Shown one piece after another: positions 4,898 to 29,048 of a stretch of DNA of 29,306 bases. Source of the DNA: Vitrella brassicaformis CCMP3155 (taxonomy: Eukaryota > Protista > Chromerida); NCBI GenBank assembly GCA_001179505.1, contig CDMY01000695.1, positions 1-29,306 on the forward strand, in the 5' to 3' direction. Within the stretch, counting starts at the first letter, position 1. Every line of letters begins with the position of its first letter. The notes beneath the pieces were generated by a model that was given only the letters and a program-made list of their open reading frames with translations, was not told where the DNA came from and did no database searches. Made by a program: the position numbers and the translations under genes.

Positions 4898-5042
4898 CCC
4901 TTCGACACCAGATCTGACCCTCACGACGGGCGAAACAACACCAGACCCGACGTGCAACCTCCAATCACAACGCGAGCTATACCCTAGACCCAAAACCCTA
5001 GCGCAAGGGGGAAAAAGCGTTCGCAAGGGAAGAGCCGCACCC
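4898..5042. promoter_or_regulatory. Putative bidirectional promoter (145 bp between start codons) with a telo-box-like AAACCCTA
   Basis: Head-to-head ATGs at 4897 (-) and 5043 (+). AAACCCTA lies at 4993-5000 and ACCCTAG at 4981-4987. Function is inferred from position only. Confidence 0.45.
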
Positions 5043-7424: not shown

Positions 7425-8491
7425 TCATTCGACCTCCTGCAGGTAGTCCTTGACCTCGGCAGGCGTGAGGACTTTGAACTTCCTGTCCTCGCCCACGACG
7501 CCGATCTCGATGGCCTCCTCGTCCATCACGCCGTCGAAACTCTCCTTGAGCGTCAGGATCGCCGTGTGAATGGCGTCCTCCAACTCCATGTCGTCATTGT
7601 ACCTGATGAGATGATGAGGGACAACACAGCACAGACAGGCCAGCCAGGCCGTTGTTGTGTGTTGCAATGCATGGGCGTGTCGAGCGAGTGGATAGGTGGG
7701 TGGGTGTGTGGGTGGGGTGGCACTGCACTGACCGTTTCTCGAGGAATGTCTTTGCGTTGATGTAGTTCTTGCCGCAGGCCGTGGCCTTCCAGGGGAAGTA
7801 GGCCCCTGACGGGTCGACCTGGAACAGATGCGGGCCCTCGTGGTCATACCTACGTGACATGACCACCATACCATGCACACACGCACAGACGAAGAGCGAA
7901 TGGTGGGAGGGAGGGATGGGGGCACTGATGTGTGACTGACTGACTGACTGACTGACTGACCCAGCGACGAGAAGTGAAATTCCGAAGGGCCTGACGCCTC
8001 CCTCCTGGGTGTACTCCTGCATGACCTCGGCGCAGTCCCGCGATATGATGCCGATGGGAATCTCCTCCTCATACCGCAAGTGATACAACGACGCCTGCAC
8101 ACACACACACCAGACACAACAGAGTGAGTATCCTCACTCACTCTCGATCACCTCACATGCACTCACTGCACTCACTGCTGTGCTGTGCTGATCCACCCAC
8201 CCTGTTTGTTACCTGTTTTCTGCCCCTGGAAACGAGCACACGGAAGTCTGGTCCCATGCCTGAGAAGGTGCATCCGACGTTGGTGAAGAGGGGCTCCACC
8301 TTGCGGATGGTGCTCGTGTCGCACAGCTTGTCCTTGACCTTCTTGTCCACCGCTATCACCACACCGTTCTTCGCCTTGACGCCCACCGACAGCGTCCCCG
8401 CCCCCACCGCAGCCAGGGCGTTCTCCACAGCCACAAGCTTGCCGCTCGGGGCGAAGGTCGTAAGGGAGAACGAGTAGTCGCTGTCACCCAT
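7425..8491 (-). CDS. PSMA2: 20S proteasome subunit alpha type-2 (divergent N-terminal region)
   Basis: Exons 8491-8213, 8094-7961, 7849-7733 and 7602-7425. Motifs [68 protein letters not shown] and [10 protein letters not shown]. Confidence 0.97.
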
Positions 8492-8734
8492 GATGGCTCA
8501 ACGGGACGAGGCAATTAACGATGCAAACACGCCTGTGACGTCTGCCGCTGTGCAGCAAGGCCTCGCAAGACGCTCGAGATTCCAGATCTCCCACAACGCC
8601 AACAAGCAGCAGCGATTTCATGCAGCACCCTAGCCCGAGCTGAGCGTGCACAAAGAGGAACAGAACGAGAAGGGACGTGCTATAGGAGCCACAGGACAGC
8701 CGCAGGACATGCTCGTTGATTGCTGACGGTCGAT

Positions 8735-9868
8735 ATGGGAGGTAGGCGAACGCAATGCAGCTTGATCTCTGTGCGTGTGACGCTGTTTGTTTGTGTGTGG
8801 CTGGTCGGTCAGATTCGGGTGACGATGACGACTTCCGCATGTCGGCTGACCAGGACGATGATGAAGAGGACGAGCAGCTGAGCCCTGGCGAGGATCTACT
8901 CTACCGCTCACCGCCTGGCAGAAGGCAACAGAGAAGACACTCCGGCAGGTACGTACGTGCAGGACACGACAGACAGACATGGCAACACCAGACAGACAGA
9001 CAGACAGACAGAAGAGTGTGTTGCTGCCGTGCGTGTGTGTGAGTAGGTATGATGATGATGAGGAGGAGGATGAGATGGGCGGTAGGGAGGGCGTCATGTA
9101 CAGCGTCACCGCTCCAAAGGCCAACAAGCGCCTCAGGGCCTGCCTGAACTGCAAAATGATCAAAACCTTCGAACAGGTAGGTACGCACACATCACACACA
9201 CAGAGACATTCCGGCAGGCAGCTGCAGCCAGCTGCAGCTGGAAGTGCGAGTCGGGTGCGGTGCCTGCCATTGGTTGGTTGCTCCGTGTGTTGTGTGTTGT
9301 GTGTTGTGTGTGTATCAGTTCTTCGAGGAGGGTTGTAACAACTGCGACAGGCTGGGTCTACAGGGCGACAAACAGAGAGTGGAGGACAACACCACCGCCA
9401 ACTTCTCGGGGTGAGTAGTGAGGTCTGTCTGAGTTCACTGAACCGGACTCCGTGTGTGATGGGATGGTATGGTGCTGGGGTGGGTGAATGCGGCGATTGA
9501 CTGAATGGCTGCAGGTTGGTCAGTTTGTGTGACCCGGCACGCAGCTGGGTGGCCAGATACAACGGGCTGAGTGAGTGAGAGAGCACCACGAGAGAGAGAG
9601 GAACACATACCTACCACATTCGCACACCTCGATTTGTTTGTATCACCCTTGTGTTGTCGTCTCTGCTTGTGCAGCTGGCAAGCTGCCAGGCTGCTACGCC
9701 GTCAGTGTGGTCGGCGAACTCTCAGAAGGTGCGGGCAGGGGTGCAACTCCACACGAGGAAATGAGGGCAGGATGGATGGATGGATGGACGTGTGTGTGTC
9801 TGTGTGTGTGTGTGTGTGTTTGTGTGTGTGCAGCTGTGCAAGACGAGATCCGGCACAGCTACGACTAG
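8735..9868 (+). CDS. SPT4: Transcription elongation factor SPT4 with an acidic N-terminal extension
   Basis: Exons 8735-8741, 8813-8948, 9047-9176, 9319-9410, 9515-9570, 9675-9728 and 9834-9868. Core LRACLNCKMIKTFEQFFEEGCNNC...NTTANFSGLVSLCDPARSWVARYNGL...PGCYAVSVVGEL has both CxxC zinc pairs. The 7-nt first coding exon (ATGGGAG|gtaggc) is inferred. Confidence 0.95.
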
Positions 9869-10582
9869 GGTGCAGACAGACAGGGGGCCGACGCCCAGAC
9901 GGACGCCTATTTGTCGTGCATACGATACGTGCCATGGACGTCTGCTGCCAGTGACACTGACTGAGACCTCGTTCTCCTCCTTGTCAGTGAAGACATACAC
10001 ACATAGATCCAATCCAATCCACTCCATCCATCCAAAACCAGCAGATAGATAGAAGTAAGTGTCCCACTCACTCATCTGTCTCATCCACCCATCCCATGTA
10101 TACGGCACCAAACTCAGTCAGTCGGTCAGTCAGTATGTAAGACGTCCGCACAGCAGGGAGTCACTCACTGGCCGGCCGATAGACAGACGCATCATCGCAT
10201 GTGACGACTGACCTTCGTTGTTCGTTCACCTACGCAGGCAGATATGACGACGAATTACCAACCATACCGGATGGATGGATGGATCGGATCGAATTGGCAG
10301 CAGTGGGACTCAGTGTGATTCAAACAAACAAACCACCACCACCACCACACCAGCAGCAGCTCACCCCACCCACGTTACACACACGCACCCAGCACTCACT
10401 CCACCCATCCCATCCACACCATATATCAGTACTGACTGACTGACCTCCCCACCGTCTCTCCCTCTCACTCTCACGGCCATCAATCAGATCAGTGGGGTTG
10501 GGTTGATCTCCCCACCGTGTGGAGCGAGCGGACACCGATAAAGCCATCAACCAGCCACCAACCACCGAACCGATCAATCAAG

Positions 10583-13500
10583 TCACCTCACCGGACGTAC
10601 TTGCGTAACAGAGGCCGAAACTGCATGCCAAGGGTCTGCACCAAGCACACAAGCAAGACGATGAATGCTCCTCTCTCTCTCTCTCTGTGCGTGTGATCGC
10701 CCGAGCGAGGTACCGTACCTTAGCACCGATTCGGCATAGTTGGCAGCTTGGGCAGAGTTTGCCGGCGAACTCGGCCTTGACGACGGTGCCGCAGTAGGGG
10801 CAGCGAGCGGTGCCGGCACCCGACGGGATCACCGTCAGAGACTCGGCACATATCGTGGTGTTCTCTGCATCACGTCACGTCACACACAGAGACACAGACA
10901 CAGACGCACGGCGTTAAATACTGATTGGGTGTGGTTGGTGGGGTTACTGACTGACTGACTGACTGACCCCATTCGTTGGGATCGTAGTTGATGTTGTGGG
11001 CGTCGGAGGCCTTCTGCTCGCACACTGCCAGACACTTGCTCGCCTGCATAGAATAGACCACACCACACACACTCAACAGATATCTATCGGTCAGTTTGTC
11101 TGTCTGTCTGTCTTGCCACGTTGAGGAAACAAATTGTGTGCCGACCGACCTGTTCGACGGCCTCCCTGACGCTCCGCTGGCCGGCCATGTTGCCCTGGAT
11201 GATGCGCTTCGCAAACTGATAATGCGCAGATGGAGGGATAGATAGATGGATGGATGGATGGCCAACCGACCAATCGGATCACACACACAGAGACAGAAGC
11301 GCATGAGTGGGCCAGTCAGTCCTATTGCGTGAGCATCGCGTGTGTGTCTGTACCGATGCGGCCGTGATGAAGTTTTGCGCCCTGAATGCGGTGGTCATAG
11401 CCATGCGGACGGCCAGCAGCAAGTGCGCCGGCTGCATCTTGCAAGTCGTCAGGTAAGACGCCAGCTCGACACCTGCACACTCACACACGCATACAAACGT
11501 ACTTACATGATGGGGTGTGTGTCGGTCGTGTGGGTAAGGTCGTGGGTAAGGTCCTCTCTCAGCTTGCTTACTTCTCGCAGCTTGGTTTTGCGGGAGGTCT
11601 TTCCTCGTGACTTCGATCTTCATGGCCTTGACGTACTCGCGGCATATCTCTATCGACTCGTTCAACTGATATCGGATACGCACACACACACACACACACA
11701 CACAGAGGGAGAGGGAGAGGGAGAGGGAGAGAGTGCACGGCGTGGGTGCCAACCCACCCACCCACCCACCACCCACCCACCTGTGCCTCTTCCTCGTCGT
11801 TGGTAGCCGTGACGAGAGGGATGGTCTGCAGCACCCCACGGAAGGCCTGCAACGCCTCTCCAAACTTGCCTGCAGTACAACACACATTCTCGCCGAACGG
11901 CCATAAGCACACAGACAGAGACACGGCGTCGCCTCCCTCCCTCCCTCCCTCCGCACCTTGTGTGGTGAGTTTGTTGGCGTCTCTGAGCATCTCGAGCAGC
12001 CCCGGTGGCGTGAACAGGTGCACAGGCACGTCATTCTTCTCTTTCAAAGTGCCGCTCGCCAGCAGAGGAAATGCCATCGACGGCGTGTGCGGCAGTCCTG
12101 GCAGGTAGCACCACGTTGCCTACACCCACACCACACAAACACACAGACACAGACACACACGTGCAGGTGGCCAGGCGTGTCTGTGTGTGTGTGTGTGTGT
12201 TTGTGTGTGTGTTTGGGGGACTGACCTGGTATGCCTGTAGGAAGAGTGGCTGCAGCGGGTCGGCGTTGATGAGTCCGATGCGCTTGCGCAGCATCTCGAG
12301 AGCTGCCTCGAAGTCACCTGGCATGACCCACAGACACACAGGCATGTGCAGTTCCCTCCCTCCTTCTGCGGGCAAAGGAACACCCCCCACCCCATCCCAC
12401 CTGCTGCGACGAGGTCGGGCACCATGGGCTGCTCACGCACCCATCTACACGATGTAGACACACACCGACTCATCTCAGACGCACCACGATGATGGCACGG
12501 CATGGACCTATCGGTGTTGTCTGTCTTTCTCCCCCTCTGCATGGCATGCTCACCGTTGCTGCGGCCTTTCTCCTCTGCTGACGAATCGGCCGGCGGCCGC
12601 TGCCGGCGCCGCTGCAGCAGGGGCTGCTGCGGCTATAAAGACAGACACATATGCACAGCAGCAAAACACTCACTCGTCGCCTGACTGCGTGTGGGTGTTT
12701 TCAGCTGATTGCGGGCACACCTGCGCCAGTGGGTGTGGTTTCGATGGTGCCGAAGTCGAGGTCATCGCCGCCCCAACCACCGCCAGGTGCCTGATGGACA
12801 TGCCACACACACACACACACACACACTCGTCCATCTCTGCTGCTGAGTTGTGTCGTGTCGTGTTGTGTCGTGTTGTGTTGTGTGGCTGAGCAGCCCACTC
12901 ACTCACCGCGGCGTCTCCCAGTGCAGCATCGAAGTCGCCCATCTCGTCTGCCCAACCGCCCTCGCCTAAGAGACGAAGACCAGCCACACACCAGACCCGC
13001 ACCATGGTGTTTGAAGGTGCCCATACGGACGAACGAACAGGTCATGTAACTAACGCGACCCACCTGCCGGCACGCCCGTGGCGTCCTCAAAAGCCATCTC
13101 CTCCTCAATGCCTTCTGGACACACACACACACACACACACATACGGTTTCACGACTGCAAGTGCATTGCTTTGCCCATTTGCGAGCGAAGGTGCACGGAC
13201 CTGCTTGTGGTCCGTTTTGCTGGTCGGTGACGTTGGCTGCGGTGGTGAGTGCGTTCTCGAATATGTGCTTTGCCGAGCTCAGCAACGGCCAGTTGGTCGC
13301 CTCTGTGTGGGCACGGCACGGCACAGAAAGAGAGAGGCACATATGAGAAAGTTGTGTGTGTGTGTGTGTGTGTTTGGGGAGTGGGAGTGGGAGGGGGAGA
13401 CCACTGTCGGTTTGTCTGATGAGTGGGAAGGGTGGGATGAGCAGCTTTGGGCTGGCGGGCATGATCGAGTCGAAGTCCACACCCTGAACCGCCTCCTCCA

Positions 13501-14535
13501 GCGCCTGCACACAACACATGTCATTCATGTGTGTTAATCAGATGATCGATCTGTGTCTGTCGTGCGTGTCCTTTGGCCCCCAGATACGTTAGTTAGGTAA
13601 CGTACCTGTGAGTACTCTGTGAGTCCGTGTGTCTTGGCTGTGAGTGCCGCCAGGGGGGTCTGCCCCACCTCTGCCAAGATCTTGACGCGCTCAGCCACAT
13701 CGCCCAACATCAGAGCTGCACCGCACCCACCATCACCACACACACACACACACATACAGACAAAGCTGCGTTTCTCTGCTGCAGGTGCATATGTGTGTGT
13801 GTGTGGCCGGACCATTATGGAATCGCGACATGACGTCGCCCCTCATTTCGGCGATCTTGAGCATCTTGCGCAGCTTGGCGATGTTGCCTGCAGTGCGGGC
13901 AGCCAGGAAGGAACACATAAAGGCGTGATTTACAGCGAATAGCACTCATTGGAAGGGGGCACATGCCCCGCCAGGCGTGTGTTGGTGCAGAAGATGCAGA
14001 GCAGACAGACATACCAGTGATGAGGTAGAGGAAGGAGAGGCGCTCGAAGTTCTTGGTGCGCTGATAGACCTGCACGATGGATGCAGACCAGACAGACAGA
14101 CACCACACACCCCACACACACCAGGCACAGAACATGGTATGACAACGGGCGTGTGTGTCTGTCGTGTAGCGGTGGTGGTGGTAGGTTACTTACCATTTCG
14201 ACAATCTGGTGGTTACCCTGACGCAGCGCCTCCACACCAAGACGTGTCCAACAAGCCTGCAGAAACACACACATACACACGGTGAGGGATGTCTGTCCCT
14301 GTTGTGCTGCCTGCGTTGGTTCCTTGCTTGCCTTCTCGTCGATGATTTGTGCGGAGGCCATGGCTTCTTCGATGTGGCCGAACTCCAAGGCCAAGTTGAA
14401 ACGCGTCCGGGGATCTTCCACAAACTGAGAGATACACACACAACACAGAGAGACATGACAGACACAGACATACAAAGCAAAGCAAAGAAAGGCCTATAGT
14501 GAGTGAATGGACGCACTCGTGTGCGAAAGACGTGG

Positions 14536-14572
<37 letters not shown>

Positions 14573-16729
14573 TTGCGTACACACCTGCAAAGCGACTTCT
14601 GGGTGTCCTTTCCGCTTGAGGTAGCCGATGACAGCATTGCCGCACAGACGTCCTGCAGCCAGCCAGCCATGAATGCGACAAACCAACCACATGTGTGTGT
14701 ATGACTACGTGTGTGTGTGCGTGGGGTCACACAGATGAGTGCGCACCTGTTTTGATGAAAGAAGCGACTTGGTTGAACTGTTTGTGGTGCAGCGCCAGCT
14801 TGAACAAGTACTCGGTGCAATTCAACTTCTGCAGTCACCACACACACACACACACAGACATGAAAGAATGGGTGTGTGAGGCGGTGTGTGGTGTGTGGGT
14901 GTGTGTGCGCGCCTGCTTCTGGACGGTGTGCTCGCGAGTGAGGAAGTAGAGGTGCTGCTTCGCCACCCTACAGACACACACACACACACACCAGGGCACA
15001 CAAGCATCGCATTCACGGCATGGATCCCTGTCTCGGTGTGTGTGTGTGCTCCCTCCCTCCCTCCCTACTTGATGATGTAGATCGGGTCGTTGAGTGAGTG
15101 GATAATGCCGTGGTCGCCGTTCGTCAGGCAGTATTTGACGTGACTCAACGTTGAGTACACAAACACTCCTGCACACAACACAGACACACACGACACACGC
15201 CTCGGTGTGGGTGTGGGTGTGGCTTGGTGTGTGGTGGCTACCGTGTTCGTCCCACGCGCCGCTTTTGATGCGGATGTTTTCGTGCAGCGAGTAGAGGTTC
15301 TCGAGCTTGCTGTCCGCCAGGAGGATGTTGTGCTTGGACAGCAAAGCCACGTGGCTCATCGACGGGGACCATATGATGTACCTAACACACCACACCACAC
15401 CACACCACAGCACCGCACCGCCCAACACACATACACATACCCCTCTCTCTCTCTGTGTGTCTCTCTCTGTCTGTCTGTGTCTGTGTCTGTTTCTGTTTCT
15501 GTGTGTGTGGGCGGATCGGTGGCGCACCTGACTCCTGAAGCGCATGTGACCTCGCCGAGCGTCTTGCGCGTCGTGAGATCGTACAGCAGCACCTGCACAC
15601 ACATCACATATGACACACACACAGACAGACAGACACACAGGCGGCGTGTGTGGTGCGGTGCCACCAACCAGACCGAACCTTTTCCTCGCTCTTGAGAAGG
15701 AGTCTGTTGTTGCCGGCGGGGAAGATGCGGTCGACGGTGCAGGGCGGCTCGATCCGCTTAGACAACTCGTTGGACAAGTTCAAGATCTCGATCCAGCCTG
15801 TGTGGCACAACCCCACACACAGAGAGACCATGTGCGGTGCTGTGCCCGTTGTGTGTGTGTGTGTGTGTGTGTGTACCTGATTTGTCGAGTGTTGCGAAGC
15901 GATTGCGCGCGATGAAGGCAACGGAGCTGGCGGAGCCCTGCCCAATTAACACACACACCAAGACAAGACGGCCAGATGTTTATTTAGGACGTGTGTGTGC
16001 GTGCGGATGTGGTGGCTGTCTTGCTGTTGCTGCAGCTGGCTGACCGTTTTGGTGGGAATGGCGTCTGCCCTGCCAACGGTGTCGACAGGGCATGTGACGA
16101 GGTCGTACGAGCCGCCCTCGGTGTCTTGCTGATGAGTGGATGACGGGCCACGATTGATTCATTGATCCGTAGAGTCGACACACACACACACACACACACA
16201 GCAGACAGGGAGGGAGGGAGGGAGGGAGGGGGGGATGCGTCCAAGAGTAGTCACACACACGGAGGGGAGGTGGATGCGTTTCTCGTCAGGTGACTGACGC
16301 ACGTAGTATACGAGGAGGTTGACTTCTGTCGGGTTGAGCGTGTTGACGTACAGGTATCGCGGGCCTGTGTCTCACACACACAAACAGACGGACAGATGTG
16401 GGGGCGACACACATACAGAGAGGGGAAGGGAGGGAGGGAGCGGCCCACGTGTGTGGTGTGTGTGTGTGTGTGTGTGACAGACCGCTGGCCATGGGGTTTG
16501 GCGGCCTCCGTGCGCTTGTGAGTGAGGTGGACGTGTCGCTCGTCAGGTCATAACGCTGTTTGGCAGTCAGCCATGACACACACCGATACTCTCGTGTGTG
16601 TGTGGGGTGGTGGTCGCGTAGCTGGTTAGTTACCGTCAGGTATCTGTCCTTGATGTAATAAAGATGGTGCCCGTGCACCTGCACACACACACACACACAC
16701 ACCCATCCGCAGGCGATTCATTTTCTCTC

Positions 16730-16760
<31 letters not shown>

Positions 16761-18777
16761 GTCTGTCTGTCTGTCTGTGTGTGTTGATACGTGGCAGGCC
16801 GGCCTCTCCCGGTCCAGCTTGAACACAACCATCCCGCTGTCATGACCTGATACCACCACAACACACACACACACACACACGTCTTTACTCCTGATGGCGA
16901 CGAGAGGTTTCTGGTGCGTGGGTCCGTACCGACAGCAATGAGGTTGGACGATTTGTGTGCGGTGAGGATCCAAAACCGGTCGTTCTCGCGACGGAATGTG
17001 TGGATGCCTGGCAGGCACACACACATTCCGTTCGTCCATAGGCCGATGCACCCACCATTGGGGACAGAGATGTCTCTGCAGGTGAGTGAGGAGCACAGTC
17101 AGTCCACCTGTTCGTTTAGAAGCGTCCCACACACGAATGGTCCGGTCTTCGGAATTGGACAGCACCAGATCCTGAAGGAACGAGTTGCACCATAATAAGT
17201 GGATGGATGGATGGATGGCATCTCCCACGAGGGAGGGACCACCGACAGACATGAATGACGTAGATACATACCTTCTTAGGGTGGAAGAGGACGCACGAGA
17301 CGTTGTTGAAGTGGCCGCGAAGGGTGTCCACCTCCCACGCTTTGGTCTCTGTCCCTCCATTCGGCGGCACACAACACAACACAACACAACACACAACAGA
17401 CAGACAGACAGACGCAAATGAGCACACGGAACCCCATGTGTGTGCGCGTGTGTGACATGTCATGTCCCTCCGTCTGAGTACCTACCGTTCATCCGCCACA
17501 GTTTGATGAGCCTGTCGTCGGCGCCCGACACGATCAGCGGGAGGCTGGGGTGGAACGACGCCCAGTTGACGCCACGGTCGTGACCCTCCAACACATACCT
17601 TCACACACACACACACACACACATGAATGGATGGACACATGGATGGATGGATGTGTGTGGTTTGGTCGACTGACTTGACGACTGCATCACTGGTGCCGAA
17701 CACGTCTGCATGCTGGCTGTGGCTCGGACCTGCACAGACAGCACAGGCCACACCCACCAGACCAGACGGACAGACACAGCACACACAATCAATAGAAAGA
17801 CACGCAATATACGAGTGGGGGTGAGCAGAGGAGAGGCGCGTAGGTGCGTACCGGATCCCGACCCACTGATGGACACGGTCTTCTCGCGCAGACCTGTTCA
17901 CACACACACAAAGACAGACAGACAGACAGACACACAGGCAGACGCAGCGATGTGTGTGTGTGTCTTGGGGAAGACCCATTCCCCCCCCCCCCCCCCCCCN
18001 NNNNNNNNNNNNNNNNNNNNNNNNNNNNNNNNNNNNNNNNNNNNNNNNNNNNNNNNNNNNNNNNNNNNNNNNNNNNNNNNNNNNNNNNNNNNNNNNNNNN
18101 NNNNNNNNNNNNNNNNNNNNNNNNNNNNNNNNNNNNNNNNNNNNNNNNNNNNNNNNNNNNNNNNNNNNNNNNNNNNNNNNNNNNNNNNNNNNNNNNNNNN
18201 NNNNNNNNNNNNNNNNNNNNNNNNNNNNNNNNNNNNNNNNNNNNNNNNNNNNNNNNNNNNNNNNNNNNNNNNNNNNNNNNNNNNNNNNNNNNNNNNNNNC
18301 CCCCCGCCTCGCCTAGCATGCATACCTGATATGTCCCACACGCGCACGGTCTGGTCGAGCGATGCCGACACAACCAGGTCGTCCTTGCGGTGGAACTGCG
18401 CACACATGACGTAGTGGTTGTGGCCCGTCAACACGGCGATGCAGCTGCGGCTCTGCCAATTCCAAATGCGCACTGATTGCAATCAATCACAACACACGCA
18501 TTGCATCGCATACACACACGGGCGAGGCGAGTCGAGTGATCCGCAGCTAGAGAGGTACACACCACACGAACGACACGAACGCACCGGTTTGGTCGTCGCT
18601 GGCTGAGAGTATCCAGGGGTACTCAGGATGAAACTGGACCGTCCTGATGTAGTCGAGGTGGCCCAGCAACGTGAAGATGCAACGACGCTGCTTGTAATTC
18701 CACACCTGATTGACACACACGCACACATACACGACCCAATCAAAAGATCGATCGATGGCATTATTATCTTGCCTTCC

Positions 18778-18808
<31 letters not shown>

Positions 18809-19152
18809 GTGCGAGCGTACTTTGATCTTGTAGTCGTCTCCGCCCGACACGAACAGGGGCTGACTCGGGTGGAAATCCACTCCACGAACCGGACCTGTGC
18901 GACCAGATCAGATGAATGACACACATGCGCAAACACGAGGAGAGAGATCCAGTCTGTCTGTCTGTCTGTTTGTCGCCCGTCCGTGGTATCTGACTGACCC
19001 TCATGTTCATCGAATTTGTCGATGAGTGATCCGATTCTGTAGTCCCAGAGCTGTATGGTGCCGTTGTGCAGCGACGCCAATATCCACGACAGCTTAGGGT
19101 GGAACGACAGACCCTTCACTCGGTTGCTCTTCGTCTCGCACTTGACCAACAT
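10583..19152 (-). CDS. COPA: Coatomer subunit alpha (alpha-COP), about 44 exons
   Basis: Starts [22 protein letters not shown]40 segments [25 protein letters not shown] and [13 protein letters not shown]; ARNRFA; [27 protein letters not shown]; C-terminal CPYCG...[11 protein letters not shown] manual walk gave 44 in-frame exons; stop at 10583-10585 after [15 protein letters not shown]. Confidence 0.98.
14257..14331 (-). other. GC-AG intron in COPA
   Basis: AAG|GCAAGC donor with TTCTGCAG acceptor joins AQIIDEK|ACWTRLG, matching the usual alpha-COP spacing (...ALDDK-NCWEKLG). Confidence 0.85.
14829..14912 (-). other. Probable second GC-AG intron in COPA
   Basis: CAG|GCGCGC donor gives TREHTVQKQ|KLNCTEY, which preserves the usual spacing. 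An upstream GTCCAG donor is also in frame but would delete 4 residues. Confidence 0.55.
18000..18299. other. Assembly gap (300 N) inside a COPA intron, flanked by poly-C runs
   Basis: C19 at 17981-17999 and C6 at 18300-18305 flank the Ns. The flanking exons join as WDISG|LREKT, so no coding sequence appears to be missing. Confidence 0.95.
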
Positions 19153-19608
19153 GATCACTCACCACAGACGACCGAACCAACAGACCAACACCAGATGCCA
19201 GGCAGAGCAGATCAATAAGAGCACGGCAGCTGAGCTGGTGCCGTCAGTCACCCTGACTGACACACACGTGGATGGGCCGGCTCGGCTGCCTGCTGACGAG
19301 AGGTGACGTCACTGCTGCAGCTGCACTGCTCAGATCCCAGCTGGATTTCACAACAGGACGGCCATCTCGACGGCACGGCAGACCGAATGGCGCAAATCGC
19401 AACGCCAACCCACGTGACCTTTGCGCGCTGAGCTTGCAGAGCCGATCGCGGAGGGAGTCCATTCTCCGCAGCGGGGCGTCCATCGGTGCCGGACACACAG
19501 AACAGAGCGAGATCTGGTTGTTTCGGTTGCATATGGTAGCGTCGTTGGCGCGCTGACGTGCGTGTGTTGAGTGGCTGGGGCGTTGGTGCTGAGCTTGTGG
19601 TGTGTGCG

Positions 19609-21906
19609 ATGGGTTCCAACTGCAGCGTGTGTGGCGACGGGCCCAGGCATGGCGAAGCGGCCTACAACGAATACTCACCGGGAGTCGCACAAAACGCGGT
19701 CAGCGACCGAGTGCTGAAGCTGGTCTGTCTGTCCCTCTCTCTCTTCATGTGTGTGTGCTTGTCAATTGCCTTTGTGTGAGTCAGCAGGACCACTCAGCGG
19801 AGGAGGCCCCCTTCACAAACAATGCGGTGAGTCAGTCAGTCAGTCAGGCTCTTCTTTCTGGGTGGGTGATCTGTGCTCTTGCGTGTCGACCGGTGCAGGC
19901 CCTGATGCCCCCCGGCCCGCCCGTCGCACCCACAGGCGTCGACGCAGGTCAGCCACAAGCCTCACCGACTTCCTGACCACCAACTTTCCCCACTCATACA
20001 TATTTGTTTGTGTGCCTCTTGGTTTCCATCTCCCCTCTCTCGCTGCCCCCCTCTCTCTCTCTCTCTCTAACATCTATCTATAGTAGCGCAGAACTCCTCT
20101 CCCCGAGGATACGCCAACGGGCAGCTGTCAGCCCGTACCGAGGGCGGACAGAGCGGGGCCACTTCCACAACTGTCAACTACTTTGAAAGGTAGGTGCGTG
20201 ACGGGTGTGTGCATGTGCATGAGCATGTGTGTGTGTATCGACCGGCGTGTGTGTGTATGTGTGTGTCGATATGTAGGGAGTTGGAGGAGCTTCAGAATTT
20301 GCCCGACGCCGGCAGCGGCAGAGTCGAGTCAAGACCACCCTACAAATTCAACACCGGTGCGGTGGGTGGCCACCTCACTCAGCCAACGACGCTCCTTTCA
20401 ATATCTACGTGTGTGTGTGTGTGTGTGTGTGTGTTGATGTGTGTCATGTAGGTGCGTCTTATGAGGGCGAGTGGAAGGGCAACAAGCGCCACGGATACGG
20501 CAAAATGGAGTGGAGCGACGGGGCCGTCTACGAGGGGGAGTGGGTCGACAACCAGGCGCAAGGTCGGTCACCCAGCCGCACACACACACACACACAGAGG
20601 CAGACACGGAGACATCCATTTTCTGTATGTGTGTGTGTGTGTGTTGTGGCAACCAGGCAAGGGTCGGTTTCTGCACTTTGACGGCGACATCTACATCGGC
20701 GAGTGGCAGGGCAACGTCGCATACGGGTCAGTCAGTGAAAGAGTGAGTGAGACGAGCTCAGCACAGCGCAGCCCAGCAAGCACAGGCACATGCATGCCGT
20801 GGTTGTCCTGATATATGTGATGGTTGGTGCGGTGCAGCAATGGCATCTACTACCACAAGCAGACCACCACATACGAAGGCCAGTGGGTCAACGACGTGCA
20901 GGTAGGTATCTATCTGGCGACCAACCCTCTCACAGATGCGTGGCGTCTAATGCGCACCGCATCTGTGGTGGCATGGCATGGCATGGCATGAGGGGATGTG
21001 ATGTGTGTGCAGGAGGGTTGTGGCGTTGAGACCTGGGGCGAGGGCAGCCGCTATGAGGGTCAGTTTAAGATGGGCAAGAAGGAGGGATACGGCATCTACT
21101 ACTGGGCCGACGGATCAAAGGTACGGACGGTGCCCACGCACACACACCACACACCACACACACACACTCACCGCCGGCCTGCCATGCCACACCATGACTG
21201 CATCCCTTTGTATGTCAGTACCACGGCGAGTGGCGCGCCAACAAGATCAACGGCTACGGCATGTATGTCGGCAAAGACGGTAGGCAAACAAGACAACACA
21301 ACACAACACCAAGCAGAGCAGACAACAGCGTCGTTTCCCCCTGTGTGGCCCATGTGATGTGCCTGTCACTTTGCACACAGGTCGAAAGTTCGACGGCCAG
21401 TGGCGCGGGAGCGTGATGGACGGCATGGGGGTCTACCTCTGGGCCGACGGACGGCGATACGAAGGCCAATACCAAACCGACAAAAAAGACGGGTGAGTGA
21501 GTGAGTGCAGCGACGATCGACACGCAGAACAGCTGGCTGTCTTCACCTGTGTGTGTGTGTGTGTTGATGCCTGCAGCTTTGGCGTGTTCATTTGGGCGGA
21601 CGGGAGGCGGTACGAGGGCTTCTGGAAGGACGGCAAGCAGGACGGACAAGTACGCCCACCATCCCCTCCACAACAAAGACACACACACACTCAGACATGG
21701 AAAGATGCACACACCCCTCTCTCTGTATCTCTCTCTCTCTCTCTCTGTCTCTCTCTCAGGGTCGCTACTACATGAAGAACGGTTCGTCTCGTCTGGCCAG
21801 GTGGGCCGAGGGCCGGCGCATCGAGTGGCTGGGCGACCAGGACCCGCCAGAGAAGGAGAGGCCAGGCGCACCGGCCCCTACAGCCACCGGAGGCACACCC
21901 ACATGA
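19609..21906 (+). CDS. MORN-repeat protein (9 repeats) with a putative N-terminal myristoylation/palmitoylation motif
   Basis: About 13 exons. Repeats YEGEWKGNKRHGYG, YEGEWVDNQAQGKG, YIGEWQGNVAYGNG, YEGQWVNDVQEGCG, YEGQFKMGKKEGYG, YHGEWRANKINGYG, FDGQWRGSVMDGMG, YEGQYQTDKKDGFG and YEGFWKDGKQDGQG. Start MGSNCSVC. The 5' exon junctions are less certain than the repeat region. Confidence 0.9.
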
Positions 21907-23979
21907 GTCATGAGTGAAGCATAGCAACCCGCCCCTGAGTGAGTGAGTGAGGGACTGATGCGTCCGTCCGTCTTGCTTGTGTGTGTCGTGTGTCGGCGTT
22001 GGTGTCACACACACGGACACCTGGCTAGCTGGCTCCCTGGCTGGCTGGCTAGGTGGGCGGGGGTATACTTATTTGTGTGGGAGGTTGGTTGGATTATCGG
22101 CTGGGGTGGGTCCATCTCTTGCCATGTCTGTATGTATGTCTCTTTGGTTTCTGTCTACCTACCTGTCGGCCTGCTTGTTTGTTGCCGCAGGGTAAGGTGG
22201 GTGAGGGGTGGCGCACGGTGGCACTTAGTGGGAGGTGGTGGTGGTGGTGGGAGCGACTTACGTGCTTGCTTACTTACTTGTGCGAATTGAGTATCTGATT
22301 GTGTGAGTGATTGATAGTTGCCTGCCTGCCTGCCTGCCCGTGGGTCTGTCTCTCTGTCTGTCTGTCTGTCTGTCTGTCTGTATCTGTGTACTTGCGCCCG
22401 CTCCGGATGGATGGATGCGATGCGCAGAGTTTTGTCCTGCCTGCCTGTTGGGGGCTGGGTGGCTGACCTGCCTGCCTCCCTGCCCGCCTGCCTGGGTTCT
22501 CTATCTCTTCTTACCTCACCCTGTTGTCTCTCGGCTCCCCTCCCTGGCTCTAGACTCCCTATAGCTCCCTCCCTCCCTCCCTCCTAGTGACCCACACACC
22601 CATACCCACACACACAACCACAGACATGCACCGTACATCCATCCCATGCCCATGCGCTTCACACACACATCATCACGACAACCACCGCCACCGCCACCGC
22701 CGTGCCATCCATATCAGCCACATATTGGTAGACACACAGACGGACGGACGGACGGATGGATGCATAATTCACTGCCTGACCTGCCTGACCCTGGCTGCCT
22801 CCGTGGTTGCGTCAGCGCCCTCTCTCTGTCTCTGTCCGTTCCGTGCATATGTGTGTGTGTATGTGAGATGAGAGAGCGCCTCTGTCAGTGTCGGCTCCGC
22901 GGTTGTTTTATTCAACTGTTGGCTAGGCGTGACAGGACAGCTGCTCTGCTCGCTGTGGGGGTGAGTGCAATCGGCGTGAGTGTGTGTCGATTGGGTGGGT
23001 GGCCTGTAAAGCGTGTCGGCGTGGCGTACAAGTAAGGAGCTGACGGACGGAGAGAAACACACAACTGCCTGCCGGCCGGAGAGTGCGCGTGAATTATTGC
23101 CTCTGACTGACTGGGTGGGTGGCTGCTTCTCTCCCTTACTTTGAGCGGTTGCTGGTTGCTTGGTTGCTTGGCTGGTTGGCTGGCTGCTGCCGTGACTTAT
23201 TCCAATGGGTGGCTGAGAGGCCGACTGACTGAGTGAGCGCTTCTTTAACATCTTGTGATCGATGTTTGGCCACTCACTGTGACGGTATGTATGAGTGAGT
23301 TGAGTCAATGCCGGTCGGTCGCCATTTCATCAAGTCGACGTACACGCATCGCATCTCATCGCATCCGTTAGTTACGCCATGGCCATGGAGGCCCGGCCAT
23401 GCACATCTGTCTGTCTGAGGGATGGATGGAGCATCTCCCCACCCACCCACACCACACCACATCTACACAACCTTACACCGCCACCCCATTCCCCGTCTTA
23501 ATTACGCCTCACACCCATACCCACCAGCAAAGGATGGATGGAATCAATGAATGACTTACCGTACGGACCGTCACACACAACCCACCCCACCCTCCACACA
23601 CATCGCATCGCATCGCGGCACCGAGGCATCGCATCCATCCATCAGCCACATAACATGCGACAAGGAAGTAGGAGGAATTAGTAATTACTGGCTGGCAGGC
23701 AGGCAGGCTACATGAGGGAGGGGCCGGCCCGGCATCCTTCTTTCAGACGCATAGATAGATAGATAGATACAGATAGATAGATACTTGGCGACATGGATGC
23801 GATGCGCGTGTGAATGGAATGCACCGACACACAACCGACCGACCGACCAACAGCACCATAACATGCAGGGCACATCTACACGGGAGAGGGGTGGGGGGAG
23901 GGAGGGAGGGAGGGGGACGTACTGGACCGACCGACAGGTTGGCCCTTGTCTGTCTCGTGATCATAGTCGATCGGATCGA
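21907..23979. repeat. Microsatellite-rich convergent intergenic/3'UTR region
   Basis: Dense short tandem repeats (GCCT, GTCT, GGAC, GGCT, CCCT, GATA, GGAT, ATCGC). I found no credible spliced CDS. Confidence 0.7.
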
Positions 23980-25168
23980 TCATATCAGTTTCTTGGATTT
24001 TGTCCGCTCCTCTTTCTGTTTCTTCCTCAGCGACTTGGAGCTCTCCTTCTTCTCCTAACGAGGGAGGCCATCACCACACACACAAACACACACACACACA
24101 CACACACACAGAGTGGGTGGGGTGTGAATAGTAGGCACGTCCGCTGTGACTGACCTTTTTGTCTTCCTGCATGAGCTTGCGTAGAGCGAAGATGGCCGCC
24201 CCAAAGAACACACTCACCACTATTGCGACTGACATAAAAAAGCGACCCACACACAGATGGATGGATGGACAGAGAGGAAGGACGCGGGAGCTTGTGTACA
24301 TGACATGTCCATGTTGGACGTGCCTGCCTCCGTGCCTTCCTTCCCTTCCCCCATCACTCACTGTAGAGGATCTTGACGCCCGAGCTCATCCGCATGTCCC
24401 ACCCACCTATCGCCGGACCAGCGCCCGCCGACTGATTCGCCTACACACACACCAAACCCAACCCACGATTGCAATGCACACGTAGGTATTGTTGCACCCC
24501 ACCTACCCTACCTGGTCAGCTTCGATGACCCTGCCGAGCATGGCCATCTGCCTCTTGCTGAGCGAGAATGGCGTGCCATCCCTGTGGTGGATGATCTCCT
24601 TGTCGACCTGCTCGGGGGTCATGGTGGGCGGCTTGTGCTTGATCATCTCGATGTGCTGGTCGTTGATGTTGAAGTAACAAAAGGTCAGGTGGCGGTGCAC
24701 AATCAGGTTGATGGCCTCGCCCTCTGACAGCCGGTTGCGGGTTTGCGGCTGGCTGAGGATCTCCTGCACCATCCGCTGCAGCAGCTCCTGGCTGCGCCCC
24801 ACCCACCCCCGCACCAGGTCCACACACATCTGACGAAAAGGAAGGAGGCAAGCAAGGAAGGAAGAATGCAATGCATCACGATGATGCCACCCATGGTGAC
24901 TGTCTGTCTGTCTGTCTGTCTGTGTGTTCGCTGAGCTCCTACTGACCTTCATTCTCTCCATCCTTTGAGGTTCAGAGAGACTGGCGTCCATAGCGTCGGC
25001 AGCGGCCTCCTCGAGCTGGTCTGCCTCTTCTTCTTGCTTTGCTTGCTCTTCTGGCACATCCTCCAGCTCTGCTGTGTCGAGATCTGCGATATCCACATCA
25101 TCCTCACCCCGCAGAGGCACCAACGAAATCGCCAGCAAAGCAACAAGCAAGATGGGAACCCAACGCAT
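23980..25168 (-). CDS. Unknown type I membrane protein: signal peptide, acidic luminal region, one TM helix, Lys-rich tail ending KKLI
   Basis: Exons 25168-24947, 24829-24512, 24440-24362, 24228-24155 and 24054-23980 are in frame. N-terminus MRWVPILLVALLAISLVPLRG; TM ILYIAIVVSVFFGAAIFAL; tail ...EERTKSKKLI*. Confidence 0.85.
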
Positions 25169-25357
25169 CTTCGGGAAAGGGATGCCTCTCCTCTCACCCT
25201 CTGCACCCTCGATGACTCATTGCGAGCTGGATCGCTTGAGGCAAGCCCAGCGTAGCCTGTAGCCTGGCGTGACGTGCACACGCAGCGGCGACAGCATGAC
25301 GACAAACACTTGAGTCCTATCAACAGACGCTCACGAATACTGACTGACCGAGTCGAG

Positions 25358-26419
25358 ATGAGCTGGGCCCAGAATCTCACCCGCAAGGGGGGTTTTTGGA
25401 AAGACGCCCATTGGTATGACCTCCACGCGCCCACCCGCCTGCCGCAGTACAAGCAGATGACCGAGCAGCTGGTCAGATCAGCGCCTCCACTCGGCGACCA
25501 AGACGCAGTGTAAGCCTATGTAGCCTGTCTGCTGCATCAATCACACCACGCACAGACAGCTAGCTGCACGACAGACAGACACATGAATACGGGTCGATGT
25601 TTCCATCTCCATGTCTGTCCACTGCGTGTCCCCAGGTGTGACTTTCTCTGCGGTTCTGGTGCTGCTGGCGTGGCCTTTCGGGAAGCCTATCCAGACGTGC
25701 CGATCACCTTCGTTGATTCGAGCACCGAGCGGCTTCGAGAGGTCAGACGCCGGGTGTCAACGAAGCAGGCTGAGGGCTCCCCCGTGTGGCGCCGCGTGCG
25801 GGAGGATGGCGACAAGGCCGCCCTCAGCAGCACCAGCACCACCAGCAGCAGCAGCCCGATGCAGATGCAGATCTCCTTCGAGGAGGGCGCACCGGTCCAC
25901 CTCCACGAGTATGCCTTCGAATATGACTCGCCGACAGCCATCCCTCACGCCCCATTCGACCTGATCATCGCACAGCTGGCGCTGCACGTGATTGTGGGGC
26001 ATGAGCATGAGACGGAGGGAGGGAGCGAGGGCGCTGTGCCTCGGTACCTGACCGTGATGCGATATCTCTGGCGGCATCTGAAGCCGGGCGGGCACCTGCT
26101 GATTGCCGACCACGTGGGTTGCCTGCCGTGCGGGCAGCAGATGGCCCTCCTGGCTGAGGGCGGCATGTTCGAGGACGTCGATGTGGCCTGGAGAGAAGGT
26201 ACGGTAAGAGTGAGAGGAGGGAGTGGGTGGTCGGGGAAGGAAGGATAGCTGATGCGTATCTGAAGTCTGTGTGCTGTGCTGTGCTGTGCTGTGCTGTGCT
26301 GCACAGGTGCGTTCTTCGTCATTGGCGGGCGCAAGTCGGTGTCAGGTGGTGCGACGCCCACATGGCACACGGCACACGGCATCGACATGAATGAACTCGA
26401 CAAAGACAAACTCAGCTAG
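25358..26419 (+). CDS. Class I SAM-dependent methyltransferase (~275 aa), prokaryote-like
   Basis: Exons 25358-25509, 25636-26198 and 26307-26419. Motif I VCDFLCGSG, ITFVDSS, FDLIIAQLALH, LKPGGHLLIADHV and terminal FEDVDVAWREGAFFVIGGRK. Confidence 0.88.
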
Positions 26420-26755
26420 ATAGCCAGTCGACAGACAGATAGACAGACAGACGGACAGACGGACAGATAGACGGGAGAGCGTCCAGTGGGGGTGCTTCTT
26501 GTGGGGTGGGGTGGGTTGGTTGCTCGGCCTGCCTGATGGATGTCAAGACGGGTGGGGTGTGGTGACTTACAATTTTGGACATGCAGAGTTGGGTGTTGGT
26601 CATGTGCTGACTGACTGACAAGTAGATCTTGCCTGTTTGTGGTGTACGTCATGGTGTATTGAAATGGCAATTAATGGCAATTCTCCCCGTTCACAAAGTT
26701 TACGCATGCAATTCCGTTGAGACGCCCTGTGGGCCACCTCAATCCGCTTGTTGAG

Positions 26756-27420
26756 ATGATGCGCTCAACAGTCATGCTCTCCCTGACGCTCTTGTTGGTC
26801 TCATGCGTCACCGCCCAAGAGTTCCTCTTGTGAGCCGAGAGAGGAGGGATGCATCCTCTCCAGGTCCATCGTGTCTGCATTTTGAACTCCCTGTGCAGCA
26901 CTGAGCCTGACGCTCCCCTTCACAAGACCAAGGAGCGGCTCAAGAGCCTCGCTGCCAAGTCGGTCTTCGAGGACGATGCAGCCTTGGGTCATGCGCGAGG
27001 CCTGCAAGACGTGAATGACACGACATCCAACACGACATCTGGTGACTTCGAGACCGTGTTCAACACTCCCGCTGACGACGGCTTCGAAGCCACGCCGCCC
27101 AAGGACTTCAGTGAGCCAAGAAGAGGAGCATGGCACCACCATTCTCTCCCATGACGTGCAGGCATTTCCGGCTGCTGGTCCCGTTCTGACCTGGAGGATG
27201 CGGCCTTCGAGGTCAACCAGGTTCGTGTCCGATGCTGAGTGACGTGGGGATACCGATGCTCTCATTTCATTAATGCATTGCTCTCCAGGTGCACGGCCAC
27301 AAGTACTTTTTCGTGGGCGGAGAGAGCGGCGTCCTGCAGGGCGACAAGGTCATGTTCAGAGGACAGGTACGTCGACGAACGGCATGAGCGGGCTGGCGTG
27401 GGCGACCTCTGGATGTGTGG

Positions 27421-27452
<32 letters not shown>

Positions 27453-27579
27453 TGCACCCAATGACTGCATGTAGGTGGGTACAATCACCGCGTCTGCTGA
27501 CGGCGAGAGGGCCACCCAGATAGACTTTGAGACCCACAGCTGGGTGTACGTCTCGGAGCAATGCGAAATCAACGTCTAG
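26756..27579 (+). CDS. Unknown secreted protein (~175 aa)
   Basis: Exons 26756-26829, 26899-27110, 27162-27220, 27289-27366 and 27475-27579 are in frame with GT-AG introns. Signal peptide MMRSTVMLSLTLLLVSCVTA-Q; C-terminal beta-rich region SISGCWS...SEQCEINV*. Confidence 0.75.
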
Positions 27580-28280
27580 ACTGACCGACTGACCGACAGA
27601 CAGACACCCATACCAACCATCTTTTTCTTTTCAACTGCATACGGACGGCATACTCAACGCAGCGCTCTCTCTTTTTGCATCTGTGGATGTGTGGATGGAT
27701 GGATGGATGGACGCCTAATTGGTCGGCTCACTGCCTCCCTCCCTTCGTGTGTGTTGTGATGTATTCTACCTACACCATCTATGTGTGCCTCCCATGTGTG
27801 TGTGTAGAAATCGCTTTGTATGTCCATCGCCTGTTTAGGTGTGTGTATGTTCTGTCTGTCTGTCTGTCTGTGCGTGATGGGTGCGGTGCATGGTTGTTGC
27901 CCAGGCATTTTGTAAGACTCGCTATCCTAGTGAGTGACGGGACTTTTGTAATCCGGCTGGCTGGCTGGTCCATCGACGGCACTTTTAACGTGAGGAGCGA
28001 GAGCGAGAGCGAGAGTGAGAGTGAGAGAGGCAGCCGTGTGTCCAGAGACGAGATAGACAGGACGACAGCTGCTGCACTCCCCTCCCCTCCCCTCCTCCCC
28101 CCGCCCTCCTCCCCGCTCGAGAGCGTGTGTACATGTATGGGGTGTTTGTTTCTTGAGTGACTGACTGCCTGACTGGGTGGGGTGGGTGGGCCGACCGATG
28201 GACAGACAGACACCTTTTTTTGTGGGTCACCGGACAGACACGAATTATTCTACATCACAGAGTCTGTTCCAGTCCGTCCG

Positions 28281-28809
28281 TCATCCTAGCAGCAGCTCAA
28301 CCACAATCACGAGCACGTTACACAACGCCAGCGGCACTGTAGAAGGCGCACAACCCGACACCAAACATCCATCCATCCATCGTGTGTGCGTGTGCGTGTG
28401 TGTTTGCCCGATGTGCTTACTTCTGAGGTATGTCCTGACGGCATAGAGCAACATGGCCACCTGGTTCTTCAGACCCTCACCTGCACACACCACACCAGTG
28501 TCGACACACACAAACCATGGCCGGCTGTCCATCCGTCTGTCTGTCTGTCCGTCTGTGCGCATGTCAGTCATCTCATCTCACTGACCATATGCAGGCTTGT
28601 CCAGAGAATCTTAAGGGCACACAGCCAGCACATACAACCATACACATACATAAACGCAAGCACATCACACATCGGCTGTCTTCGCTTTCTGCCTTTTCGT
28701 GTCGTGACACGTACGTACACTTAGCGAGGAATCGTTTGTCGTGGAGGATGGCGAGTGCGTTGGCAACAAACAGAGCCGCCTCCAGCAGATGCAGCAGCGT
28801 GAACGCCAT
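28281..28809 (-). CDS. YOS1: Yos1/IER3IP1 family ER-Golgi transport protein (76 aa)
   Basis: Exons 28809-28719, 28609-28586, 28480-28421 and 28336-28281 give MAFTLLHLLEAALFVANALAILHDKRFLAKYSLDKPAYGEGLKNQVAMLLYAVRTYLRMPLALCNVLVIVVELLLG, matching the IER3IP1 pattern MAFTL...NAIAVLHEERFL...RTVMRVPLI...LLLG. Confidence 0.95.
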
Positions 28810-28966: not shown

Positions 28967-29048
28967 CGACAGCTGCAGGATTCGAACCTGCGCGGGTAAC
29001 CCTAGTGGATTTCAAGTCCACCGCCTTAACCACTCGATCCAAACTGTT
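28967..29048 (-). tRNA. trnS-UGA: tRNA-Ser(TGA), degenerate and possibly a pseudogene
   Basis: AACAGTT TG GATCG AGTGGTTA AGGC G GTGGA CTTGAAA TCCAC TAGGGTTACCCGC GCAGG TTCGAAT CCTGC AGCTGTC G. Anticodon and T arms are perfect, with a long variable arm and G discriminator. The 1:72 pair is A/C and the D-stem is distorted. Confidence 0.85.

Follow-up and report, generated by a model that had tools for sequence, protein, structure and literature searches.

The introns on contig CDMY01000695.1 of the chromerid Vitrella brassicaformis CCMP3155 (assembly GCA_001179505.1) are polarised in the direction of transcription: AC-type repeats often follow the donor, GT-type repeats mostly precede the acceptor, and the 3' arm of the intron behaves as an equivalent of the polypyrimidine tract in which G largely replaces C. 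The 5' arm is weak and optional. We analysed the entire contig of 29,306 bp (hereafter, the window), whose G+C content is 54-62% except in the segment that holds an assembly gap. Our counts are based on a curated set of 82 introns from ten genes (8456 nt), with 9495 nt of exons for comparison.

Counting tracts of at least 6 nt and reading their positions on the sense strand, we found 51 AC and 99 GT tracts in the introns, against 2.4 and 5.7 in mononucleotide shuffles and only 4 and 6, respectively, in the exons. A preliminary description of the same DNA had reported AC tracts near donors, GT tracts near acceptors, and the latter as the more common element, and the positional profiles bear this out: 43 of the 51 AC tracts lie in the 5' half of the intron (median relative position 0.26) and 87 of the 99 GT tracts in the 3' half (median 0.77; AC vs GT, Mann-Whitney p = 4e-15), and 63 of the 82 introns hold a GT tract vs 35 with an AC tract. 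Both tracts are present in 28 introns, GT alone in 35, AC alone in 7 and neither in 12. Where both occur, AC stands ahead of GT in 26 of 28. The last GT tract has a median distance of 11 nt from the intron end and is joined directly to CAG in 12 introns. Related repeats fall on corresponding sides: GACA repeats lie in the 5' half in 11 of 13 cases and GA/AG repeats are also 5', TGTC repeats lie in the 3' half in 7 of 11 cases and TC/CT repeats are also 3' (CT, 5 of 6). In the composition profile, A+C amounts to 0.60-0.68 in the first 40% of the intron and G+T to 0.70-0.78 in the last 40%, with a neutral centre. The last 40 nt exceed the first 40 nt in G+T in 77 of 82 introns (p about 1e-17), so that on this contig the pattern is as widespread as had been supposed. 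It was seen in nine of the ten genes, and with the coatomer alpha gene COPA left out, 36 of 43 GT tracts still lie in the 3' half and 13 of 16 AC tracts in the 5' half.

The polarity had also been said to flip with gene strand. Because AC...GT is its own reverse complement, introns with both arms carry no strand information, and this part of the evidence originally offered falls away; only one-armed introns test the claim. Among the GT-only introns, the tract lies in the sense 3' half in 9 of 11 on the plus strand and 23 of 24 on the minus strand (32 of 35 in total); therefore, the polarity follows transcription. The tract of AC-only introns lies in the 5' half in 6 of 7. The polarity of the tracts and its dependence on the sense strand are thereby confirmed.

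The composition of the 3' arm is more constant than its repeats. T makes up 0.38 +/- 0.07 of this arm in all four tract classes and A only 0.11 (0.38-0.41 and 0.08-0.11, respectively, in the interval before the acceptor); in the last 30 nt, G is 0.33-0.37, C 0.14-0.19 and C+T 0.55-0.57. G and C trade off against each other (rho -0.73), and introns that lack a GT tract have CT-type tails with C at 0.23-0.31. This trade-off makes CT-type and GT-type tails interchangeable. The three shortest introns, all in the small secreted-protein gene g27 (26830-26898, 27111-27161 and 27221-27288, plus strand; 51-69 nt), carry neither tract, and their tails are short and of an ordinary, C/T-containing kind; the tract architecture is therefore not obligatory. 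Replacement of the polypyrimidine tract at acceptors, as previously proposed, is evident from the last 40 nt: the median intron has no pyrimidine run longer than 4 nt, and runs of at least 8 nt are found in only 7 of 82 introns, while G/T runs of at least 10 nt occur in 49 of 82. Across the 82 introns, what precedes the acceptor is not a canonical C+T-rich run upstream of AG but a U-rich, A-poor, AG-free interval.

AG accounts for 0.002-0.007 of the dinucleotides in the last 30 nt vs ~0.03 expected from base frequencies, a 5-15-fold depletion. The density of YAG is 1.8/kb in the 3' arm, far below the 24.6/kb of exons and the 37.8/kb of the 5' arm, and the AG-free zone before the acceptor has a median length of 54.5 nt vs 12.3 nt when intron cores are shuffled. 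Per 40 nt, the information content of the 3' arm comes to 8.6 bits at order 0 and 15.5 bits at order 1, and that of the 5' arm to only 1.4-3.5 bits; the donor (consensus GTNNGT) holds 7.6 bits and the acceptor core (CAG) 5.4 bits. In several introns the nearest A beyond 10 nt from the acceptor sits 40-60 nt upstream of it; in the intron at 9729-9833, over 40 nt separate the acceptor from the first A on its upstream side. Such A-free stretches imply that the branch point lies no further downstream than the beginning of the U/G segment, unless it is unusually near the AG. The sequence ATGTG, an A followed by TGTG, occurs in 24 introns vs 4.8 expected; these junctions may simply mark tract edges. 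A poly(UG) fold (pUG-fold) as the general basis of the pattern was ruled out, since only 7 of the 99 GT tracts reach 23 nt.

Gene models were obtained with our own exon/intron dynamic programme and then adjusted by RNA joints, conserved protein blocks and reading frame. Pfam searches were run one exon at a time, and exons were joined only to check frames; exons matched WD40, B-prop_COPA_B_2nd, COPI_C, MORN, Spt4, Yos1, Proteasome, Bac_globin, Pentapeptide and Methyltransf_12. Our models and the public annotation agree closely in gene range and product length. All 82 introns have a GT or GC donor and an AG acceptor, every spliced frame is open, and the median intron length is 103.5 nt. Neither an excess of introns with lengths divisible by three (25, 31 and 26 introns in classes 0, 1 and 2 of length modulo 3) nor the frequency of in-frame stops (41 of 82 introns carry one) was notable. 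Four public runs behaving as RNA assemblies were aligned over 8950-14949, where their contigs gave spliced support for 11 of the 82 introns and also matched seven contiguous exon pieces. The joints read GT..AG at SPT4 introns 9411-9514 and 9571-9674, and CT..AC at COPA introns 10636-10718, 10865-10967, 11044-11149 and 11216-11353 and at further COPA introns at ~11473-11571, ~11870-11956 and ~12318-12400; those at 10636-10718 and at the two SPT4 introns were each found in four runs. The genes are as follows.

3713-4899, minus strand: pentapeptide-repeat gene (Pfam Pentapeptide); 3' GT tract in 5/5 curated introns, AC tract in 0/5
5294-6102, plus strand: truncated-globin gene (Pfam Bac_globin); 3 introns, polar
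7425-8493, minus strand: proteasome alpha-subunit gene (Pfam Proteasome); 3 polar introns, outside the range 8949-28718 of the preliminary description
Introns 9177-9318, 9411-9514 and 9571-9674, plus strand: SPT4 gene (Pfam Spt4)
10590-19152, minus strand: COPA (coatomer alpha) gene (WD40, B-prop_COPA_B_2nd, COPI_C); 42 curated introns and one gap-holding intron; G+T higher in the 3' than in the 5' arm in 39/42; annotated product 1243 amino acids, annotated end 19152
19609-21906, plus strand: MORN-repeat gene (Pfam MORN); 12 introns, 11/12 polar; range as annotated
23980-25170, minus strand: secreted or membrane protein gene, family unassigned; 4 introns, 4/4 polar
Exon 25637-26197, plus strand: methyltransferase gene (Pfam Methyltransf_12)
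26759-27579, plus strand: g27, small secreted-protein gene; range as annotated; the sole gene weak for polarity
Intron 28481-28585, minus strand: YOS1 gene (Pfam Yos1); product of 76 amino acids, as annotated
28967-29048, minus strand: tRNA-Ser(UGA), directly upstream of YOS1; the only match in an Rfam scan of the window

The eight introns named in the preliminary description are all present where it placed them, to within one base. They are listed here together with three further introns, with z scores for minimum free energy (MFE) relative to shuffles where relevant.

9177-9318, plus strand: SPT4 intron; CA tract on the 5' side, run of GT/TGT tracts on the 3' side; z = -4.85
9729-9833, plus strand: GT-only intron with ~45 nt of GT repeat running into CAG; z = -0.58
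10865-10967, minus strand: COPA intron starting (GTCA)5; covered by RNA contigs
14257-14331, minus strand: COPA GC-AG intron with a 3' GT tract; donor AAG/GCAAGC, the GC donor being required by the frame and by the conserved ...IIDEK/ACWTRLG...
14829-14912, minus strand: COPA GC-AG intron with 5' CA tracts and 3' (TG)9; donor CAG/GCGCGC
15169-15241, minus strand: COPA intron, present as previously named
15798-15876, minus strand: COPA intron starting GT(AC)12, with a short 3' GT tract; AC tract unpaired in the MFE structure
17894-18325, minus strand: COPA intron around the gap 18000-18299; donor GTATGC at 18325, acceptor AG at 17895-17894
20563-20656, plus strand: MORN intron with two arms, (CA)9...(TG)8, and a bridging stem, the best hairpin case; MFE -48.3 vs -29.8 kcal/mol for shuffles, z = -5.49
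27367-27474, plus strand: GT-only, its (TG)n tract 29 nt long; less stable than shuffles, z = +3.0
28481-28585, minus strand: YOS1 intron; GACA repeats on the 5' side, GT tracts on the 3' side; z = -1.26

The boundaries of 9177-9318 are fixed by its flanking exons, which match positions 1-15 and 16-45 of the Spt4 profile. For 14829-14912, a GT donor 12 nt upstream was considered and rejected, as it would delete four residues of a conserved block. The commonest donor hexamer is GTCAGT (10 of 82). We also observed introns that open with tandem 4-nt repeats copying the donor, (GTCA)5-6, (GTGA)3 or (GTGG)n, at 10865-10967 (minus), 7850-7960 (minus), 21493-21576 (plus) and 11666-11780 (minus), so that in-register pseudo-donors recur every 4 nt behind the real donor.

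Complementary arms invite a structural explanation, and RNA hairpins had been suggested as a general way of defining these introns. In such a scheme, the 5' AC and 3' GU arms would zip and bring the splice sites together, and a polypyrimidine tract and U2AF2 would be unneeded, as in teleosts. The position of the repeats and the weak polypyrimidine tract match the fish class. However, we consider a structure-based definition improbable here, because the two arms occur independently of each other. Per intron, the Fisher odds ratio for co-occurrence of AC and GT tracts is 1.17-1.37 (p 0.6-0.8, n = 82; p 0.61 for the tract classes given above, and 1.17 with p 0.80 for half-restricted tracts), and thresholds of 8, 10 and 12 nt give p 0.21, 1.0 and 0.68. 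Tract lengths are uncorrelated (Spearman rho 0.10), as are A+C of the 5' arm and G+T of the 3' arm (rho -0.05). Using RNAduplex on the 45-nt 5' arm against 3' arms with 10,000 permutations, we obtained a mean energy of -23.7 kcal/mol within the same intron, -24.06 with the 3' arms of other introns (permutation p 0.69) and -24.18 kcal/mol across the exon. Like arms pair with each other at only -16 to -17 kcal/mol. Because own, other and across-exon energies are equal, the complementarity is generic and lacks intron specificity.

Folding of whole introns separates a minority from the rest. Over all 82 introns, the mean MFE is -29.2 kcal/mol vs -27.2 for dinucleotide shuffles, an advantage of 7% (mean z -0.57), and shuffling each half separately gives -27.5 kcal/mol, equal to the whole-intron shuffle. 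Only the two-armed class (24 of 82) folds better than its shuffles, at -37.8 vs -32.0 kcal/mol; its mean z is -1.7, and 46% of its members fall below -2. The 36 introns (44%) with a 3' GT tract and no 5' AC tract have z 0.01 and a nearly neutral 5' arm (A+C 0.55). Of the six two-armed examples in the preliminary description, three fold far better than shuffles (z -5.5, -4.9 and -2.8); z for the named examples spans -5.5 to -0.6, apart from the +3.0 of the GT-only intron 27367-27474. Of all predicted base pairs, 67% bridge both intron halves. In fish, by comparison, the repeats are co-enriched and the introns are about one third more stable than shuffles. Hairpins as a general means of intron definition are thus not borne out; a minority of introns have them, apparently as an outcome of end compositions that are independent of each other, and not as their basis. 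On the sequence evidence, the other suggested agent, a UG-binding factor, appears to fit the data better.

Therefore, our working hypothesis, which we hold with moderate confidence, is that these are introns of the normal Vitrella architecture, ~100 nt long with GT(GC)-AG ends, carrying two independent position-specific composition signals of which the 3' arm is read linearly. Specifically, almost every intron carries a U/G-rich, A-poor, AG-free segment of ~35-40 nt abutting the acceptor, with (GT)n and (TGTC)n as its extreme form. This segment occupies the position of the polypyrimidine tract; it would perform its job and would be read as linear sequence by the 3' splice-site machinery, possibly by a protein like the large subunit of U2AF or by another UG-binding protein with RNA recognition motifs (RRM). 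It would also keep the interval before the acceptor clear of rival AGs and branch-like As. About half of the introns have in addition an A/C-rich, U-poor segment of low information after the donor, with (AC)n, (GACA)n and (GA)n as extremes, and replication slippage may inflate whatever simple repeats each side tolerates. AC-GU hairpins would then arise in the ~30% of introns that happen to hold both arms; they may aid splicing, with the layout not having been selected for them. The polarity, its sense-strand dependence, the independence of the arms, the depletion of AG and the information content are direct observations from which we infer the binding factor, the slippage and the selective reason. 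Avoidance of AG has been documented in Drosophila as a force that shapes 3' intron composition and polypyrimidine tracts (PMC10946897). It is possible, and we propose it only tentatively, that Vitrella has rewired its 3' splice-site recognition, with the UG-repeat element as a constitutive, genome-wide replacement of the polypyrimidine tract, whose reader would be either a U2AF large subunit of altered specificity or a TDP-43/CELF-type RRM protein that binds UG and has been drawn into the core pathway, and with the CA-rich 5' arm as an optional second signal of a linear or weakly structural kind.

Several points weigh against reading the 3' arm as a linear signal. The set comes from one 29-kb contig, and COPA alone contributes half of the 82 introns; ~70 intron boundaries rest on our own models, for which the acceptor matrix was trained on first-pass introns, and the contrast is weaker among the 11 introns with RNA support (5' A+C 0.58, 3' G+T 0.65). 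A search for branch-point motifs in the 82 introns yielded no CTRAY-type signal (CTRAY is present in 16). Any protein reading the UG stretch is hypothetical, and the account offers no explanation for the 5' A/C arm, in which GT dinucleotides are depleted no more than its low T content predicts. Finally, because any 5' and 3' arms pair at -24 kcal/mol, a generic, non-specific zipper may operate in introns with an A/C-rich 5' arm.

Other explanations dispense with a positive signal altogether. The tracts could be a neutral by-product of microsatellite slippage and a transcription-associated strand bias, with no role in splicing. They are of low complexity, vary in length and are missing from about a quarter of the introns, and the three shortest g27 introns apparently splice with neither. 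Moreover, the sense-strand 3' flanks of MORN (21907-22500), COPA (9990-10590), methyltransferase (26420-26720) and g27 (27680-27980) are also G+T-rich, with skews of 0.2-0.45, although skews in untranslated region (UTR) proxies are mixed overall, the sense strand being G+T-rich in four to five of eight genes. A background G+T bias of the sense strand may therefore contribute. Nevertheless, a bias tied to transcription should be uniform along the intron, and its sign flips mid-intron in 77 of 82; a strand asymmetry that reverses within ~100 nt cannot be produced by transcription-coupled mutation alone. The neutral intron centres, the anchoring of the GT tract close to the acceptor, the constancy of T while G and C trade off and the 5-15-fold shortage of AG argue in the same direction, and we regard the neutral account as unlikely. 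Alternatively, the introns might merely exclude decoys. With a length of 100 nt, they would tolerate T, and with it GT, only where it is too near the acceptor to act as a donor, and A, and with it AG, only ahead of the branch point; GT-free repeats alone would then survive on the 5' side and AG-free repeats alone on the 3' side. In agreement with this idea, the median stretch without GT beyond position +7 is 28 nt long vs 8.4 nt in shuffles, the AG-free zone is similarly extended (54.5 vs 12.3 nt), GTNNGT pseudo-donors occur at 79/kb in the 3' arm vs 11/kb in the 5' arm, and GA/AG and GACA repeats are 5' while TC/CT and TGTC repeats are 3'. Yet (AC)n and (CT)n hold neither GT nor AG and are polar all the same (AC 43/51 in the 5' half, CT 5/6 in the 3' half). 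Because of this, and because GT in the 5' arm is no rarer than expected from T, a positive preference for U on the 3' side is still needed, and exclusion of decoys as the only cause seems distinctly unlikely to us.

We also considered whether the arms are what decay has left of the terminal inverted repeats of transposons that generate introns, that is, of introners or miniature inverted-repeat transposable elements, as in Amoebophrya, Micromonas and Aureococcus. AC...GT is an inverted repeat, and Amoebophrya, also an alveolate, has introners with inverted repeats of 8-20 nt at the intron ends (PMC7789003). However, an all-against-all blastn of the 82 introns of this one contig gave only low-complexity matches of at most 26 nt and no families, and permuting donors and acceptors leaves the length of boundary direct repeats unchanged (mean longest run 3.67 nt observed vs 3.61 nt permuted, p 0.28). 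Because the arms are in addition independent and most introns one-armed, we deem such an origin highly improbable.

The gap-holding COPA intron (17894-18325) was excluded from every count. Its upstream exon ends ...GAC ATA TCA G at 18326 and its downstream exon continues from 17893 with GT CTG CGC after AACAG; the phase-1 split codon G/GT reads through as ...WDIS-G-LREKTV..., as expected for coatomer alpha, so that the COPA frame is continuous across the gap. The readable 3' part of the intron has (AC)n and then TGTC/GT repeats before the acceptor, in the same order as other introns. Within 17964-18325, the gap is flanked on both sides by a C homopolymer on the plus strand, corresponding to poly-G in the COPA pre-mRNA, which probably caused the assembly gap.

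A number of observations concern the neighbourhood of the genes. A single RNA contig runs unbroken over 9837-10635 from the last SPT4 exon (plus strand) into the last COPA exon (minus strand); either the 3' UTRs of these convergent genes overlap or abut, or the assembler merged both transcripts. A candidate 5' UTR intron lies at ~8949-9045. The divergent 5' ends of the methyltransferase gene and its minus-strand neighbour (25170-25457) are uncertain: the former has an annotated start at 25457 (242 amino acids), yet an in-frame ATG is present at 25358, and the annotation of the latter extends to 25411 (276 amino acids) while our model starts at a signal-peptide ATG at 25168. After MORN, ~1.4 kb without an annotated gene (22500-23900) consists of alternating strongly A/C-rich and G/T-rich blocks, which may be an unannotated transcript or long UTRs. 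Finally, (GGAT)n/(ATCC)n tetranucleotide repeats recur across the contig in introns and intergenic DNA, e.g. at 9775-9790, 10270-10285, 11235-11260, 17200-17220, 17630-17650 and 27695-27715.

How do these introns compare to known systems? The canonical polypyrimidine tract with its AG-exclusion zone is read by U2AF, and tract and reader are among the most conserved parts of intron recognition. The Vitrella segment resembles it in lying between the presumed branch point and the AG, in its U content of ~40%, in being A-poor and AG-depleted, and in that a minority of introns use C for G; it differs in that the partner of U is usually G and not C, often in a perfect dinucleotide microsatellite. 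Linear repeat elements near splice sites are also known in humans, where TDP-43 binds the (UG)m tract of CFTR intron 8 and hnRNP L binds CA repeats. These proteins regulate single exons, and at the 3' splice site of CFTR the UG repeats act as inhibitors. The likeness lies in the same dinucleotide repeats, whereas the Vitrella element would be a general constitutive signal. The (AC)m-(GT)n introns of teleosts and lamprey are a minority class, found in 10% of zebrafish genes, that was defined by the co-occurrence of the repeats across introns and not exons, with folds about one third more stable than shuffles and a function shown experimentally (Lin et al. 2016, PMC4691745). Vitrella shares with them AC after the 5' splice site, GT before the 3' splice site, an obscured polypyrimidine tract and some bridging hairpins; unlike in fish, nearly all of its introns have the 3' arm, the two arms vary independently and their pairing shows no preference for the same intron. 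The introners of Amoebophrya (Farhat et al. 2021, PMC7789003), which form sequence families, are bounded by direct repeats and for the most part use non-canonical splice sites, likewise belong to an alveolate and have complementary 5' and 3' ends able to form a hairpin; the Vitrella introns, by contrast, are GT/GC-AG and have neither families nor boundary repeats.

On introns, the chromerid genome paper mentions only number and size, and our literature search found no description of the AC/GT layout for Vitrella or other alveolates. When metagenomes were scanned with the proteasome exon, all matches came from distant eukaryotes with at most 74% identity, and none from Chromera or another relative; the best full-length match has few introns, and these are ordinary. 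The methyltransferase exon, used in a word search, recovered the Vitrella protein (100% identity) and no relative.

In the window, the 3' segment holds as much information as either splice-site motif. For chromerids this has consequences in gene prediction, since acceptor models of the standard kind will underperform. The layout also offers a comparison with the AC/GT introns of fish, in which the same repeats act through structure. If our interpretation is true, an intron-rich, free-living relative of the apicomplexans in which ~90% of introns end U/G-rich would show that the polypyrimidine code can shift, and if recognition has indeed been rewired, Vitrella would be a natural system with a changed sequence code for polypyrimidine-tract recognition.

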